Sequence record: NC_010153.1
DNA length: 36,895 nucleotides
Strand: one strand, 5' to 3'
Every line of letters starts with the position of its first letter. The first letter of the stretch is position 1. The notes under the pieces are model-generated. The model was not told the DNA's origin. It saw nothing but the letters and a program-made list of their open reading frames with translations, and made no database searches. Positions 1,829-16,330 of the stretch are shown here, one piece after another. A program made the translations under genes and the position numbers.

Positions 1829-2440
1829 TTACTTCACCTTTGAGAACTGACATGATTTTCTTAACTCACAATACCTACATTCATTGAATGGTGCTATAAG
1901 TGTTTTTGCCATGTACCTCTCTATTTGTCTTTTTATCCATTCATCGTCCACGTGATATTGGGAGAAGAACATTTGTCCTGTCTCTATTTCTGTTACTTTC
2001 CCGTCTTCCACTATGAATTCTCTCATTTCATTATTCCCCACGTATACGATTACTCCTTTAGTTGCATTTATCATGTTCATGTAGATTAATACTTGGAATA
2101 TGTGTTCATCGTAGGGATGATCTGGTGGTTTTGCTACCGTCTTGAATTCTACTACGATGTTGTCTTCTGTTAGACCGTCTAGTCTTCCTATTAACGTGTA
2201 GTTCCCGTATTTTTTCCTTACTTCTTTCTCAAACTCTATCTTCTTTTCCCCGTATGTTGTTAGCAATTTCTCTAGTCCTTCGTGGAGTGCTACTCCTCGA
2301 ATTATTGCTGTGTCTGGTTCCTCTCTTCTTGGTCTTAATATGCAGTGTAAAAGGTCTGTAACGTAAATTTCGCCTTCTTTCTTTGGTGAATGTTCTTGTT
2401 GCATTTTCTTAAACGCCTTTTTAATTTCTTCCGTGATCAT
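1829..2440 (-). CDS. cas4: Cas4-like (RecB/PD-(D/E)xK) exonuclease, 203 aa
   Basis: N-terminal Cys (LHCIL), GxxxH (GVALHEGL), GRLDG...VEFKT catalytic motif, QxxxY (QVLIY), C-terminal CxxC-x5-C (CRYCELRKSC). ATGA overlap with the helicase stop. Confidence 0.85.
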   Translation of the reverse strand: MITEEIKKAFKKMQQEHSPKKEGEIYVTDLLHCILRPRREEPDTAIIRGVALHEGLEKLLTTYGEKKIEFEKEVRKKYGNYTLIGRLDGLTEDNIVVEFKTVAKPPDHPYDEHIFQVLIYMNMINATKGVIVYVGNNEMREFIVEDGKVTEIETGQMFFSQYHVDDEWIKRQIERYMAKTLIAPFNECRYCELRKSCQFSKVK

Positions 2441-4218
2441 CTACAGATCACCTCAACCATTTTTTCACCTAGTACCGACTTTGCCGTTGTCTTGTTTGTG
2501 CACAGTTCCGTCTTATTATGTATTCCAGCTCTCATTAACTGTACTGCTCTCTTTCTTCCAATACCCGGTAATCTGACCAACGCCAGCGCTTCGCTTGGGA
2601 CTCCATATCTAGTTTCTAGATAGAGCATTTGTAGCTTTTTCGCTAGCTCTACTTTCCCGAGTGCTTTTGATATTCTATATACACCGTATGTTTGCCATGC
2701 TAATGTTTCTACTAGTTTGTTCAAGTCATGTAGTGACATTCCTTTTGTGCTTTTCACGATGATCTTGTCATCAACTCCTTTTATCCAGTTTTCGAAGATT
2801 GTTCTCACGTTTTCGCCTTTTGACGCATCCATCACATTTCTGTTTTCTAATACTGCATTCACGATGTCTTCTACTGTTGCATTGTCTCTGTCCAACACGT
2901 CTTTGTATGCTATTGCGTCTCTAACGTCAAAGTATGATTCAGCAACAGCTCTTCCGTAAGTCGTTGTGTAATATCCTGTATTATCGTGTCCTAGAATTTT
3001 TGCTTCAACTAGTTTGTTTGTTGTCTCTATTATTTCGCCTTCGCTTAGGTCTTTGAAGGACAGGGTATATTTTGTGATTCTCTTTAGCTCATCTTCTTTC
3101 ATATACACGTATTTGGATACTGTTGCAAGTATGAAGTCCTCTAAAACGTGATGCGGTGTTAGACTTCCATAGTCTACGTTGAAGTAACGCCTTGCTAATT
3201 TCTCAGCTTCTTTTATGTCGGTTGCTTCAATTACGCAAAGTCCTTCTTCATCATAGCCTGGTCTTCCTGCACGTCCGCAAATTTGATCGAATTCGATTGG
3301 TGTTAGTGATCTCCATCCTATAAATCGTCCGTATTCGATGATAGGCAATTTTAGATCGTCGAAAATGACGGCATAGAATGGGAAGTTTACGCCTTGACCT
3401 AGGGCTGTTGTCGTGATGATGATGTTGTACTTACCAGCTTTTGTCTCCTCTAGTAGTCTCAGTTTTGCGTCAGGTTCTAATCCGGCATGGAAGAACGCAA
3501 CTCTTTCTCTGTATCTTTTATCGTAAATGAGGTAGAGTTCTTCAGCTTTTTTCCTAGTACTGGTGAAGATCATGACTACTTTTCCTTTTTTCGTTAGTTT
3601 TGTAACGAGGTCATCTTTCATTTCTATCTTATCACCGTCCTCGAAAAATAGTGTTTTTCCTATTTTTATTGCCTTGTAAATGGGAATTGGTCTTTCGTCA
3701 GTTTGTAATACTTCAGCATTTGTCACGTTTGCGATCTTGTCTATGTCAGGAATTGTTGCGCTCATCATTATCAATCGTATTCCTTCGTTCATTGCGTATG
3801 CCATGAGATTCTCGATTGCTTTTCCTCTTTCTTTGTCGCCAACGTTGTGTATCTCGTCTATGATAATCATTTTCACGTTATTTGTCCATCCGTAATGTCT
3901 CCTCAGTACTGCATCAGCTTTCTCGTACGTCGTGAAGATGATCTTGGCGTCAATGTTCTCGGGGTCTTCGTCGTAAACTTCGCTAGTTAACGCTGTGGTT
4001 GGTGTCGTTGTCGAGATTTTCTTCTGGAAGTCGTCGTTCAACTGTAGGGCTAATGCTTTCAAGGGGACTGTATAAAGTACTCTTCCGTTTGCTTCGTTGG
4101 AGAGAAGCATTGCTAGGAATGATTTTCCTGTGCCGGTTGGTGCCGAGATCAGTATATTCTTGTTTGTGTTGTGGAATACGTCAATCACTCTCTTTTGGAA
4201 TTCACTGAGCTTTACCAT
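2437..4218 (-). CDS. SF2 Ski2/Hel308-like helicase, about 593 aa
   Basis: Walker A APTGTGKS, DEIH, SAT, FFHAGL, QICGRAGR, C-terminal HhH LPGIGRKRA. Start moved to ATG 4218, after SD-like GGTGGGA. Confidence 0.92.
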   Translation of the reverse strand: MVKLSEFQKRVIDVFHNTNKNILISAPTGTGKSFLAMLLSNEANGRVLYTVPLKALALQLNDDFQKKISTTTPTTALTSEVYDEDPENIDAKIIFTTYEKADAVLRRHYGWTNNVKMIIIDEIHNVGDKERGKAIENLMAYAMNEGIRLIMMSATIPDIDKIANVTNAEVLQTDERPIPIYKAIKIGKTLFFEDGDKIEMKDDLVTKLTKKGKVVMIFTSTRKKAEELYLIYDKRYRERVAFFHAGLEPDAKLRLLEETKAGKYNIIITTTALGQGVNFPFYAVIFDDLKLPIIEYGRFIGWRSLTPIEFDQICGRAGRPGYDEEGLCVIEATDIKEAEKLARRYFNVDYGSLTPHHVLEDFILATVSKYVYMKEDELKRITKYTLSFKDLSEGEIIETTNKLVEAKILGHDNTGYYTTTYGRAVAESYFDVRDAIAYKDVLDRDNATVEDIVNAVLENRNVMDASKGENVRTIFENWIKGVDDKIIVKSTKGMSLHDLNKLVETLAWQTYGVYRISKALGKVELAKKLQMLYLETRYGVPSEALALVRLPGIGRKRAVQLMRAGIHNKTELCTNKTTAKSVLGEKMVEVICR

Positions 4219-4441
4219 TGTTCCCACCTGAGTAGAATTCTTTTTCGTCAATTCTTCGTATTACAGAAATTTTCGATATTTTGATGTATATTGGATTTCC
4301 TTGCTGGTCCTCACCAAGAATGTTATTATAGTCGTCTATCTCTACGATCTTTAGTCTGTATTTTCGTCCTTGAGCCAAGACCTCTATGATGTCTCCTACT
4401 GAGAATGATATTTTTCCGAGGACGAGCTGTTTTTTAGCCAT
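4202..4441 (-). CDS. Small beta-barrel protein, possibly Sm/LSm-like, about 79 aa
   Basis: VGDIIEVLAQGRKYRLKIVEIDDYNNILGED resembles Sm1; IYIKISKISVI resembles Sm2. Fold call is by eye. Confidence 0.55.
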   Translation of the reverse strand: MAKKQLVLGKISFSVGDIIEVLAQGRKYRLKIVEIDDYNNILGEDQQGNPIYIKISKISVIRRIDEKEFYSGGNNGKAQ

Positions 4442-10412: not shown

Positions 10413-12092
10413 TTATTTTGATTCAAAAATTATACCTTCATATTCTTTCATTACAAAGCTATATCTTTGGTCAAACTGTCTCTGAAAGATTTCGTGATTA
10501 TATGCTATATCTAATATTATCCCTTTCTGTTTATTTTTATACGGGCGCATTACCCGCCCTATCCTCTGGACCAACTTTATTCGGCTTTTCCCTTGTGATA
10601 GTAATATAATCAATTTTAGATTTGGAATGTCCAGCCCTTCATCCGCAAGACTTGTAGCTATTAATGTTTGTATTTTGCCATTTTTCAGATTTTCTATTTT
10701 TCTCATTCTTTCCTCAAGTTTTGTTTGAGAAGTTACGTAATCCGCACTAATTCCATTTTGGTTAAACAACTCTGATAATTTCTTAGCAGTGCTAATTCTT
10801 CTAACAATTATTAGTGCCGGATACGAGTTTATTTCTTTTATTTTTTCTAGTATTTGCATGTTTGTACCTGGCGAATTTTCAAATAACCTCAGCAATAATG
10901 AGTAATATTTTGCAAATTCCATGTCATCTTTTTCTTTTTCCAATTTCTTTATTTTCTCTTTCAATTTCTTTGGAACTTCTGGTACAAATGGAATGTACTC
11001 TAGAGGCACTAAATAGTGATTTTTAACTAGTTCCTGATAATTAATGGAATATGATATTCTTCCTAGTAATCCTGTAATTTCTAAATCTCTTCCGTCTTCT
11101 CTGAAGGGAGTGGCGGTTAAGCCTAGGCGTATTGAATTTGGCGCATCAACTAGCAAAGATTTGATACTACTGGTGGGCGTATGGTGTGCCTCGTCTATTA
11201 TTATTAAGTTCGAATTATTAATAATATCTCTAAGCTTATCGTTTTTTCCTCTTTTCTTTTGCGAATAATAGTAAGATATTGATAATGCTATAAGATTGCT
11301 ATCTTTTTCTTTTTTCAATTCATTAATTTCACCTGATACTATCGCAAAGTCTAGATCTTCTCTTTTTGCAAACTGTTGAAATTGTTTCAAGAGTGTAGTT
11401 GAATTTACTGCGTATACAATTTTAGAATTTTTCTTGTTTTTCAGCATTTGTAACGCTGATATTATTGCAATTACAGATTTTCCAGAGCCCGTTGGAGCTT
11501 TTATTATTCCAGTGCCAATTATGTTAACATCAGAAAGCCATGATCTTATTGAATTTATCTGGTAATCTCTTAACTCAAAGTTTTTCAATGTAATGTCGTG
11601 AAAACTGAAATTGGCAAATGGTTTTATTTTTATCTCATTGGTATTTAACAATCTCCAGTATAACCCTCTATAAGTTACGAAGAAATTGTAATGTTCCCAT
11701 GCTAACAATATTTCTTCTTCTTCATATTTTCCTCTGTCATAATCGAATTTCTTTAGCTTATATGTCAATAATTTTTTGTATTTCTCAAGATCATCGTAAA
11801 TATAAATATAGTTCCCTTTGATTTTGGCAAACACAATTTCTTTCGTAGAATTAATGTAAGGCGATAATATATTGTAAATTTCTTCTCCGATATAATCTTT
11901 CAAGAAATCCGCAATTCTTTTCAATTCTTCTTTTTCAATCCTGGAAATTTTAAGCTCGTTCAAATACCAGGTCTTGGTACTTGGATCAAAGTCCGCAATT
12001 TCTTTTATCGCTAGTAGGTATTCTCTAAATTCGTCTTTCTCTAAATACTTTGTTAGTTTAGGGATAGGAATTTTATTATTGTTAAAAGACAT
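10413..12092 (-). CDS. SF2 helicase, XPB/Rad25/UvsW-like, about 559 aa
   Basis: LRDYQ Q-motif, APTGSGKS, DEAHH, GLTATPFREDG, EGLDIP, QRIGRVMR. Start placed at ATG 12092 after SD GGTGA (ORF track uses GTG 12107). Confidence 0.92.
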   Translation of the reverse strand: MSFNNNKIPIPKLTKYLEKDEFREYLLAIKEIADFDPSTKTWYLNELKISRIEKEELKRIADFLKDYIGEEIYNILSPYINSTKEIVFAKIKGNYIYIYDDLEKYKKLLTYKLKKFDYDRGKYEEEEILLAWEHYNFFVTYRGLYWRLLNTNEIKIKPFANFSFHDITLKNFELRDYQINSIRSWLSDVNIIGTGIIKAPTGSGKSVIAIISALQMLKNKKNSKIVYAVNSTTLLKQFQQFAKREDLDFAIVSGEINELKKEKDSNLIALSISYYYSQKKRGKNDKLRDIINNSNLIIIDEAHHTPTSSIKSLLVDAPNSIRLGLTATPFREDGRDLEITGLLGRISYSINYQELVKNHYLVPLEYIPFVPEVPKKLKEKIKKLEKEKDDMEFAKYYSLLLRLFENSPGTNMQILEKIKEINSYPALIIVRRISTAKKLSELFNQNGISADYVTSQTKLEERMRKIENLKNGKIQTLIATSLADEGLDIPNLKLIILLSQGKSRIKLVQRIGRVMRPYKNKQKGIILDIAYNHEIFQRQFDQRYSFVMKEYEGIIFESK

Positions 12093-14858: not shown

Positions 14859-15157
14859 GCAGGAATCACAACTAATTCTTTCAGGAATCTGTTGAGGGTA
14901 GTTCCCCTCTTTTTCAGCTCTAGTCTTACCAACATTTCGTTTCTTTTTTCTAGTTTGCAATTTATTCTATAGTATTTCTTTCCGTTTACGACGATATAGC
15001 TACCTTCCAAATCTTGTCTTTTGTAATCTCTAGTTTTATCTTCGATGTTAAAGTACTCCTTCAATATTTTTCTGATTACTGCCGGTACACTAACGCCTTC
15101 TTCCTGTGCCTTCTTTCTTAGGAATTCAAACACTTCTTGTTCAACTGTTACCATCAT
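14855..15157 (-). CDS. Tandem RHH transcription regulator, 100 aa
   Basis: MVTVEQEVFEFLRKKAQEEGVSVPAVIRKIL and YRINCKL...KKRGTTLNRFLKEL. Confidence 0.8.
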   Translation of the reverse strand: MMVTVEQEVFEFLRKKAQEEGVSVPAVIRKILKEYFNIEDKTRDYKRQDLEGSYIVVNGKKYYRINCKLEKRNEMLVRLELKKRGTTLNRFLKELVVIPA

Positions 15158-15242
15158 GTTACATCATGACAATTATTTGTAGTGCAATATTTAAACCTTT
15201 CTTTTAAGTTAAATTTAAAAATGTGCTATCATAAAGTTTCTT

Positions 15243-15533
15243 ATGGAGCTTGTTAAGATTTCCGTAAGGTTTAATCAAAAGTTGAAACTTATTTTTGATA
15301 ACATAAAACCACGAGATAAGACTAACGACGGGTTTTTGCGTGAGCTTTTTAGCGAATGTAGTGACGTCGTCGAGAAGGTGAGTTACGATCTGGGTGAGAA
15401 TTTGAGACCATATTGCCTAAGGTTGTCTCCAGAACTAGTAAAGAGTCTTGACGGTCTAGGCGAGAAGCTAGGTCTGTCTAGGTCAGAAGTTATAAGGCGA
15501 TTGATTTATGCGAGGGCGAAGAAACTGTGTTAA
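15243..15533 (+). CDS. Tandem RHH/CopG-like regulator, 96 aa
   Basis: YCLRLSPELVKSLDGLGEKLGLSRSEVIRRLI is a CopG signature. Confidence 0.8.
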   Translation: MELVKISVRFNQKLKLIFDNIKPRDKTNDGFLRELFSECSDVVEKVSYDLGENLRPYCLRLSPELVKSLDGLGEKLGLSRSEVIRRLIYARAKKLC

Positions 15534-15584
15534 TTGCACAGGTGGTGAAACCTGGGTTCTACATTGACTATAAGGTGAGGAGCC

Positions 15585-15920
15585 TTGAAGATATCCCATG
15601 GCACTTCATCCCCTTCGTCAAGACAATCGGAGAAGAAAAATACGGGACAAACGATATGTGTTACGTTATCATTCGACTACGACGAATGGAGTCATCCGAT
15701 ATTCGTGGAGGGGACTATTTGCGAGCCACTGCAGGAGGGAAGGGAGAAGGAGCAGGTGAGGGAAATGATGGAGGAATTGGAGGATCAAATTCTGGACTTG
15801 TTCGGAGTGCAAGTTCTCCCTCTTCTCACAGACGAGGGGATTTGGTATGGTGGTGCAGTAGGAAAGAGGATTATTTGGTACCATCGCTATCCTTCGGACG
15901 GGAGGGAGTACACGTGGTAG
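15585..15920 (+). CDS. Acidic hypothetical protein, 111 aa
   Basis: Strong SD GGTGAGGAG before the TTG start; protein-like composition; stop overlaps the next start. Confidence 0.65.
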   Translation: MKISHGTSSPSSRQSEKKNTGQTICVTLSFDYDEWSHPIFVEGTICEPLQEGREKEQVREMMEELEDQILDLFGVQVLPLLTDEGIWYGGAVGKRIIWYHRYPSDGREYTW

Positions 15921-16330
15921 ATGCTAGGCAAGTTGTAAAACTAGACGTGGACGTGGACGTTACATGGTATGATCCAAACTGGTTACTGGAGAAGAAATTA
16001 TCGCTCTTGCACGCCCTAGGCTATAGAGAGGAGAAAGCCTGGTGGGAATTATCCCCGTCGGGAAGACATGTGCACCTGATAATTGTCCTTCCGAGTCCTC
16101 TCTCCACGAAGGAGCTCTTTGATCTTCAGTTTCTTCTAGGCGACGACCCAAAGCGTGTGGAGTTTAACTACTTGCGTTACAATGCCATTGGGGAAGATGC
16201 TATTCATTTTAACGTCCTCTATGCATACAAGAAGTCCTTAACACGGGTTGACAAGCTAAGGGCAATTTTCCGACATTGGGCGAGGTCTCTGCAATATTCG
16301 AAGAAGCGTAACGAGGGACAGATGACATAA
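15914..16330 (+). CDS. Candidate minimal replication protein (AEP primase-polymerase-like or HUH), about 138 aa
   Basis: GTG 15914 after SD GGGAGGGA; motifs LDVD, SPSGRHVH, LGDDPKR, LYAYKK. This is the C-terminal half of the 267-aa ORF-track call. Confidence 0.6.
   Translation: MVDARQVVKLDVDVDVTWYDPNWLLEKKLSLLHALGYREEKAWWELSPSGRHVHLIIVLPSPLSTKELFDLQFLLGDDPKRVEFNYLRYNAIGEDAIHFNVLYAYKKSLTRVDKLRAIFRHWARSLQYSKKRNEGQMT

Follow-up and report, generated by a model that had tools for sequence, protein, structure and literature searches.

A gene nested within ORF267 of Acidianus filamentous virus 7 and a candidate minimal primase-like domain encoded by the same locus

Introduction

The described systems closest to the locus studied here are primase-polymerases (Prim-Pols) belonging to the archaeo-eukaryotic primase (AEP) type, the replication operon of pRN1, the Rep proteins of rudiviruses and overprinted genes such as those of phiX174. 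The locus is ORF267 of Acidianus filamentous virus 7 (AFV7; Betalipothrixvirus pezzuloense), and the window, that is, the whole stretch of DNA that was analysed, is the complete 36,895-bp genome of this virus (NC_010153, 100% identity). The open reading frame (ORF) in question, read in frame 0, ends in a small domain with AEP-like motifs, hereafter the mini-domain, and encloses a shorter gene read in the +1 frame. On balance, based on comparison of related genomes, we favour the interpretation that the locus is triple-coding, specifying a long protein, a nested protein of 111 residues and possibly a free form of the mini-domain, with a putative role in the initiation of replication.

AEP enzymes of the Prim-Pol type (pRN1 ORF904, the CRISPR-associated Prim-Pol 7NQF, the PolDom of LigD and AEP-TOTE) have in common with the mini-domain a strand bearing DxD, a hairpin with SxSG(+)GxH and, in sequence, hydrophobic residues followed by D and then by basic residues. 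The likeness extends to the RRM-like core and, in related elements, to the presence of a helicase as a neighbour. The spacing of the motifs in the mini-domain, about 40 and about 25 residues, resembles that in pRN1. There are also clear differences: proteins with the mini-domain are only 100-150 residues long, lack the N-terminal module of some 60-100 residues, and have neither a zinc stem nor a helix-bundle or PriL-like domain. Moreover, the mini-domain of lipothrixviruses is fused, via an overprinted linker, to a group-specific segment of 41 residues. At the level of gene order, the orf56/orf904 module of pRN1 likewise has a primase-like gene by a helicase and 3′ of a gene for a ribbon-helix-helix (RHH) regulator. 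In having an RHH regulator gene upstream, ORF267 resembles the pRN1 replication operon (PMC4234260).

Rudiviruses belong to a related virus family (Ligamenvirales), and their Rep is a small RRM-like protein of about 120 residues. AFV7 has, like it, a strand of the form G-x-H-x-H-hydrophobic and, close to the C-terminus, a Y-x-Y, whereas the invariant acidic DxD and GDD of the AFV7 family are absent from rudiviral Rep. Overprinted genes, exemplified by B, K and E of phiX174 and by overlapping ORFs of RNA viruses, resemble the AFV7 locus in that one gene lies wholly within another in a shifted frame, and in that constraint is asymmetric, with a folded domain read in one frame and a disordered segment in the other. 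The difference is that in AFV7 the folded and strongly constrained product is the nested one. No case of such overprinting in an archaeal double-stranded DNA (dsDNA) virus was found in the searchable library; nor did the literature that could be searched, which excludes subscription-only papers such as the AFV3-8 genome paper, contain anything linking betalipothrixviruses to a primase or describing the overlap. In a global survey, neither AFV1 nor AFV2 was reported to have typical replication proteins, and the helicases of AFV6 were uncertain (PMC4889955).

Results

Selection alternates between two reading frames

An earlier note on this DNA, made from the sequence of AFV7 alone, treated ORF267 as a mis-called frame that conceals two genes led by Shine-Dalgarno (SD) sites, at TTG 15585 and GTG 15914, and held that these two genes explain the stretch better than the single ORF does. 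The features on which it relied (the ORFs, their starts and SD sites, the low-complexity run GGKGEGAGEGNDGG in frame 0 of ORF267, LDVD, SPSGRHVH and GDD, and YAYKK in the C-terminal part of ORF267) are all present where it placed them. To evaluate their significance, we compared orthologous loci in 15 genomes, among them AFV3, AFV6, AFV8, AFV9, SIFV, SIFV2, two IMG/VR contigs, five metagenomic contigs and SSFV3, a distant relative that is 42-52% identical. In all 15 the frame-0 ORF has 252-309 codons, and a nested +1 ORF spanning 109-141 codons is present as well.

Variable sites were counted for each frame-0 codon position in 12 genomes. In the N-terminal part preceding the nested TTG (gene nucleotides 4-57) there are 7, 9 and 26 variable sites at positions 1, 2 and 3, respectively, and over the 22 codons overlapping the nested leader (nucleotides 58-123) the counts are 18, 12 and 34. 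Within the nested core they become 133, 57 and 37, the maximum coinciding with the third position of the +1 frame, and in the C-terminal domain they are 89, 43 and 216. Because the codon-position maximum shifts to the third position of the +1 frame in the core, purifying selection alternates between the frames, acting first on frame 0, then on +1 (with the switch at about position 15650) and then again on frame 0. The alignments agree with this pattern. Frame-0 residues 1-41 and 130-250 show good conservation, unlike residues 62-129, while the +1 translation across the middle of ORF267 is highly conserved from QTxCVTLSF to EYTW-stop, the nested products being 54-91% identical.

The long frame is nonetheless no mis-call. 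Across the nested core (88-103 codons) frame 0 has no stop codon in any of the 15 genomes. When synonymous codons of the nested protein were resampled for 10 of these genomes, 4.2-5.9 frame-0 stops per genome were expected and the probability of finding none was 0-0.006 in each; the third frame of the same ten has 2-10 stops over the core. The first 41 residues of ORF267 are under purifying selection in frame 0, with variation mostly at third codon positions, and its start codon is ATG, GTG or TTG in every relative examined. Since stops are missing in every genome and both the N-terminus and the start codon are conserved, translation in frame 0 evidently runs from 15527 across the linker and on into the C-terminal domain. 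The linker itself (pLDDT, the predicted local distance difference test score, of 21-34 in the AlphaFold model) has a sequence dictated by the nested gene, frame 0 being merely kept free of stops there. The 41-residue segment had no tblastn match in contigs L027 or L030, two of the related elements described below.

These results bear directly on a strict two-gene model, in which only the 111- and 138-residue proteins would be made and the 267-residue ORF would be an annotation artefact. We consider this model quite unlikely. It does draw on the SD-led start codons at 15585 and 15914, on the fact that most members of the mini-domain family are stand-alone proteins, and on L027, whose homologues are encoded by two distinct genes, the one for the mini-domain starting at an ATG of its own. 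What it leaves without explanation is the conservation of the first 41 frame-0 residues with their third-position variation. The same is true of the open frame over 88-103 codons in all genomes where four to six stops are predicted, and of the start codon at 15527, which never departs from ATG, GTG or TTG and shares bases with the stop of the preceding gene, ORF96b. Hence the view of ORF267 as a mis-call, and with it the claimed superiority of two genes over the long frame, does not hold.

The nested gene

The other half of the same proposal, an SD-led gene starting at TTG 15585, is borne out, the +1 frame being conserved better than the annotated frame over 15651-15917. Judging by sequence conservation, the nested gene is real, and the conservation pattern of the +1 ORF is far beyond chance. 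The TTG start, with AAGGTG six to eleven bases 5′ of it, is invariant in the 12 betalipothrixvirus-like genomes, and SSFV3 retains GGTGA-N5-TTG even though its frame-0 residues differ at this place. Given the frame-0 protein, the chance of the 22-codon leader staying open is 0.03-0.25 per genome and that of a start codon persisting at the TTG site is 0.15-0.31 per genome; both the open leader and the start codon are kept in about five diverged lineages.

The predicted product consists of a disordered leader (residues 1-22) and a conserved beta-beta-alpha-beta-beta domain (residues 23-111, encoded by 15651-15917). The AlphaFold2 model, built from only 13 sequences, has a mean pLDDT of 77, rising to about 90 for residues 21-100, and shows a hairpin, a long helix, a short helix and a second hairpin. 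The stretch that folds confidently in the +1 frame is the one predicted to be disordered in frame 0.

Free-standing homologues of the nested product were also detected. A protein of 111 residues encoded on contig L030 (2083-2418, minus strand) begins right at the conserved core; it is matched by the nested-family profile (hhalign Prob 97.4%, E = 1.5e−11) and is 31.5% identical to the AFV7 nested product over 92 residues in tblastn. This protein is in turn similar to a 115-residue protein of L027 (BLASTP E = 1e−12). The homology of the L027 protein to the nested family is established solely through the L030 intermediate, because direct hhalign comparison with the nested family gave only P of about 0.02, with 4 of 300 shuffles reaching the score. 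Since it is the nested frame that encodes the folded, strongly constrained product, and since this product has free-standing homologues, the nested gene is probably the older of the two, and the long ORF appears to have been extended across it.

A programmed +1 ribosomal frameshift at about 15650, fusing the 41-residue N-terminus to the nested domain and perhaps followed by a second shift back, would account for the sharp switch of constraint from frame 0 to +1 at that point. We regard such a frameshift as very improbable. No conserved slippery site is present, the Gly codon before the switch being GGG, GGA, GGC or GGT; the TTG at 15585 and its SD site are invariant and the 22-codon leader is open; and free-standing homologues begin at the conserved core, without the N-terminal segment.

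Searches of Pfam, NCBI-style models, PDB, fold libraries and the Atlas matched the nested product to no known fold or family. Profiles A1 (of frame 0) and A5 retrieved nothing useful from PDB sequences, the sole match of A5 being the WSHP of a Strep-tag, and DUF7030 matched one relative weakly (25.1 bits, below the cut-off). An Atlas language-model lead linking the product to Polysacc_deac_1 fragments was corroborated neither by fold nor by profile and was rejected; it probably reflects the LSFDYDE motif. None of the seven reference betalipothrixvirus records examined (AFV3, 6, 7, 8, 9, SIFV and SIFV2) has the nested gene annotated, and some gene callers already predict the ORF on metagenomic contigs (P0001 and P0002).

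The C-terminal mini-domain is AEP-like

A profile of the C-terminal domain was searched against 1.84 billion cluster representatives (E ≤ 1e−3), yielding 64 proteins. Nearly all of them are 100-150 residues long, are covered by the domain over its whole length, and are mostly stand-alone proteins beginning at the DxD strand. In an alignment of 56 family sequences, 21-48% identical to AFV7, residues D140, D142, H183, R210 and R217 are invariant, and Q201, G205, D207, N214 and L231 are conserved in at least 90%. The consensus of motif II is SxSxxGxH, with SSGKGLH or SGRGVH in many members, and by sequence it corresponds to the sGxGxH motif of AEPs. DxD of motif I is on a predicted strand (136-141), and H183 of motif II is in a hairpin between strands 170-175 and 182-187; in the sequence alignment motif II matches GYH of the Prim-Pol 7NQF. 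The candidate motif III is LLGDD, whose D207 precedes the invariant R210 and R217; the model becomes poor after residue 215. Residues 133-215 were modelled by AlphaFold with pLDDT of 70-88 as a beta-alpha-beta-beta-alpha, RRM-like core.

Several searches point in the same direction. Pfam models matched 18 of the 56 members, namely AEP-TOTE (11), DNA_primase_S (5) and LigD_Prim-Pol (2), all below threshold. The best scores were those of relative P0112, with 23.8 bits for DNA_primase_S (cut-off 26.8) and 22.2 bits for AEP-TOTE (cut-off 27). One family member matches a PHROG annotated as DNA polymerase/primase. In PDB the top two sequence matches of the family profile were the CRISPR-associated Prim-Pols 7NQF and 7NQD (E = 0.13), with DxD and GxH aligned. 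The Atlas feature search returned the PF24387 "AEP-like" cluster (0.91, 171 shared features), and AEP-TOTE and LigD Prim-Pol came up in the Atlas search by shape.

A number of observations weigh against assigning the domain to AEPs and against a separately made short form. The N-terminal AEP module that precedes DxD is missing in the family: in the AEP-TOTE and LigD profiles DxD comes at about position 87-99, and family proteins begin 3-12 residues before their DxD. ORF267 does not have the two-module AEP fold either, as the 130 residues preceding the domain are the 41-residue segment and the disordered linker. AEP Pfam models gave no match to AFV7 itself and only sub-threshold matches to its relatives, and the ORF267 model is poor outside residues 133-215. 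As for the short form, SSFV3 lacks the start/stop overlap described below, and the internal start is not clearly conserved there. Negative results of other searches complete the picture. PF24387 and PF22548 found no match in a six-frame search of the AFV7 genome, and Pfam and NCBI-style scans of ORF267, of its 138-residue part and of the 111-residue product retrieved only the family's own PHROG, phrog_12608. With the C-terminal domain as a query, solved structures yielded generic ACT/RRM folds only.

Taken together, these data moderately support an AEP-like mini-domain, kinship with AEPs being consistent with the sequences but sub-threshold. We label the domain AEP-like rather than a demonstrated member of AEPs because the family has no N-terminal module. 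Of the small AEP-like enzyme envisaged at the outset, the conserved catalytic motifs and the existence of a stand-alone form stand, while profile matches stay below threshold and the N-terminal module is absent.

According to another possibility, the mini-domain is a non-catalytic ferredoxin/ACT/RRM-like module for binding nucleic acid or some ligand, such as a regulator or a protein that binds the origin and derives from an AEP. We see this as rather unlikely. The lack of the AEP N-terminal module and of any Pfam match above threshold fits such a protein, whereas the retention of DxD, His, Asp, two Arg and Asn in members only 21-48% identical does not. Because the AEP catalytic set is invariant across very divergent members, a retained active site can be argued for.

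The second enzymatic role suggested for this product was that of an HUH nickase with a YxxK tyrosine. Specifically, the C-terminal domain would be a rolling-circle Rep like that of rudiviruses (SIRV1 ORF119, PDB 2X3G), with HVH binding metal and YAYKK supplying the Tyr. In AFV7, HVH is indeed followed by hydrophobic residues and, some 50 residues later, by YAYKK; the domain is RRM-like, and Foldseek produced weak matches to Rep domains (9pqf, E = 0.038; a rudiviral Rep, E = 0.017). However, only the second His is invariant in the family; at the first, H, Y, L, V, F or W occurs. SSFV3 has F and R where AFV7 has Y232 and Y234, and other members carry F/S/T/K or further residues there. Comparison with rudiviral Reps (2X3G family) by hhalign was not significant (Prob 2.3% over 21 columns), and an HUH enzyme would leave the invariant DxD and GDD unexplained. 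This reading is hardly tenable, and a nickase acting through HUH and Tyr is ruled out by the non-conserved first His and Tyr residues.

A possible internal start

All 12 betalipothrixvirus-like genomes have a start codon at or adjoining the nested stop, in each case with a G-rich, SD-like stretch 5′ of it. In AFV7, GTG 15914 overlaps the TAG of the +1 ORF (GTGGTAG). Across the genomes the arrangement takes the form A/GTGGTAG, ATGGTAA or, in one lineage, CTG/TTG and then a GTG that is part of GGTGA, AAGGTG lying upstream. The position of GTG 15914 corresponds to the natural N-terminus of stand-alone family members, 3-12 residues before the DxD strand. Because of this correspondence, termination-reinitiation at GTG 15914, which would yield a 138-residue protein, is plausible from the sequence.

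Layout and annotation of the locus

The features of the locus are collected in Table 1. Upstream of ORF267 lies ORF96b, and its stop overlaps the start codon of ORF267 (GTGTTAA); on account of this overlap the two genes probably form one operon.

Table 1. Coordinates of features at the ORF267 locus of AFV7
Feature	Position	Strand	Remarks
ORF96b, CopG-type RHH regulator	15243..15533	+	Pfam RHH_1, 28 bits (cut-off 20.5)
AFV7_gp24 = ORF267, annotated hypothetical protein	15527..16330	+	GTG start, 267 residues, 804 nucleotides
ORF267 N-terminal conserved segment, residues 1-41	15527..15649	+	From alignments; limited to lipothrixvirus-like genomes
SD-like AAGGTGAGGAG, 5′ of nested TTG	15572..15582	+	
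Nested +1-frame gene, 111 residues	15585..15920	+	TTG start, TAG stop 15918-15920
ORF267 frame-0 linker, residues 42-129	15650..15913	+	Gly/Arg/Ser-rich, poorly conserved, predicted disordered
SD-like GGGAGGGAG (15900-15908) and GTG 15914	15900..15916	+	Candidate internal start
C-terminal AEP-like mini-domain, residues 130-267	15914..16330	+	138 residues
Motif I, DxD in LDVDVD	15944-15952	+	Mini-domain; D140/D142
Motif II, SPSGRHVH	16052-16075	+	Mini-domain; H183 invariant
Motif III, GDD	16139-16147	+	Mini-domain; followed by R210, N214, R217

The stretch had also been described as locally richer in GC. This is correct with respect to its left neighbour, since the GC fraction of 15001-16000 is 0.416 and that of the kilobase before it 0.35, and fails with respect to the right half of the genome, all of which is at 0.39-0.44.

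Gene callers split the locus inconsistently. In L026 (4635-5420) it was called as a 139-residue protein and a 75-residue fragment, and in L008 (2404-3189; SSFV3/SSRV2) as two overlapping ORFs; public annotations of the ORF267 family are therefore heterogeneous. SIFV0031, annotated as an ORF of 65 residues (L003, 2189-2386, minus strand), is antisense within the conserved C-terminal domain of SIFV0030. No counterpart is annotated in the other six viruses, and SIFV0031 is probably a spurious call.

Genomic context and relatives

Both gene families of the locus are also found in related elements. In L027 and L028, contigs of 20.8 kb linked to Metallosphaera by source names, one strand carries in succession a 193-residue gene, the 115-residue member of the nested family, a mini-domain gene (127 residues, 23-nucleotide overlap), genes for 83 and 53 residues, an SF2 helicase and a Cas4-like nuclease. 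In L030 the mini-domain gene overlaps the helicase gene, and the nested-family gene is on the other strand. At least five gene families are common to lipothrixviruses and the three contigs (16-21 kb; source names of Metallosphaera and Desulfurococcus metagenome-assembled genomes). The parts of the contigs that were examined showed no capsid genes, and the contigs may represent a related group of viruses or plasmids.

AFV7 has corresponding genes at a distance from ORF267. A Cas4-like nuclease, a 607-residue SF2 helicase, encoded at about 2473-4212, and a gene resembling the 83-residue one are clustered at 1844-4432 on the minus strand, and the helicase is 38% identical to that of the L027 type (E = 8e−135). 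The block is syntenic with the genes that follow the pair of nested-family and mini-domain genes in L027 and L028. Together with the ORF267 locus, it may constitute a dispersed replication module. A second ResIII/SF2 helicase is present in AFV7 at 11100-11579 on the minus strand, within an ORF of 577 residues (E = 1.3e−28).

Among other filamentous viruses, ORF144 of AFV1 (L034, 4235-4669) falls into the mini-AEP-like family (hhalign Prob 97.7%, E = 2e−12). Directly 5′ of its gene, and overlapping it, is ORF166 (L034, 3748-4248), which has a weak C..Y..HP..C.P pattern resembling that of the nested family; hhalign gave P = 0.014 over 28 columns only. Matches to the mini-domain by fold alone were found in BFVD for Q573B9 (AFV2 ORF116), A0A3S8NF03 (SBFV3) and H9AZY6 (HHIV-2), and, going by the predicted structures, these proteins probably belong to the same family.

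Discussion

The evidence from codon positions, stop codons and free-standing homologues can be accommodated in a model with three products. Ribosomes starting at GTG 15527, coupled to the RHH regulator gene, would produce the 267-residue protein, in which the 41-residue N-terminal segment would be tethered by the 88-residue disordered linker to the primase-like mini-domain. The nested gene within the linker would be translated from its own SD site to give the 111-residue beta-beta-alpha-beta-beta protein. Ribosomes may re-initiate at GTG 15914 after the nested stop and release a free mini-domain of 138 residues, the form in which most relatives occur. The mini-domain, to judge from its motifs, would bind a divalent metal and a nucleotide through DxD, His and GDD. 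It could act as a minimal AEP-type primase or nucleotidyl-transferase that initiates viral DNA replication, possibly with the nested protein and the SF2 helicase of the virus as partners. The short isoform, the catalysis and the partnership with the nested protein or the helicase are the parts of this model that we infer. Co-folding of the nested domain with the N-terminal 45 residues and the C-terminal domain gave a score of 0.00, which speaks neither for nor against binding.

A more specific scenario is that of a split minimal AEP primase, in which the mini-domain would represent the whole active site and the nested-family protein, whose gene lies just 5′ of the mini-domain gene or within its long form, would replace the N-terminal module in trans. 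With the SF2 helicase, the two would form the replication initiator of those filamentous archaeal viruses, AFV1 among them, in which no polymerase or primase can be recognised. We consider this scenario unlikely.

What the three-product model implies concerns, in the first place, the start of replication in lipothrixviruses and their relatives. The conserved minimal AEP-like family is a candidate for this role in betalipothrixviruses and AFV1 and, going by fold, probably also in AFV2, SBFV3 and HHIV-2. The annotation of betalipothrixviruses is also corrected, seven reference records having missed a conserved and well-folded gene. Furthermore, the locus is an instance of overprinting in a dsDNA virus of archaea, one in which the nested gene appears to be the older. 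Finally, an active mini-domain would rank with the smallest primase-type enzymes and would tell how far the AEP fold can be cut down.

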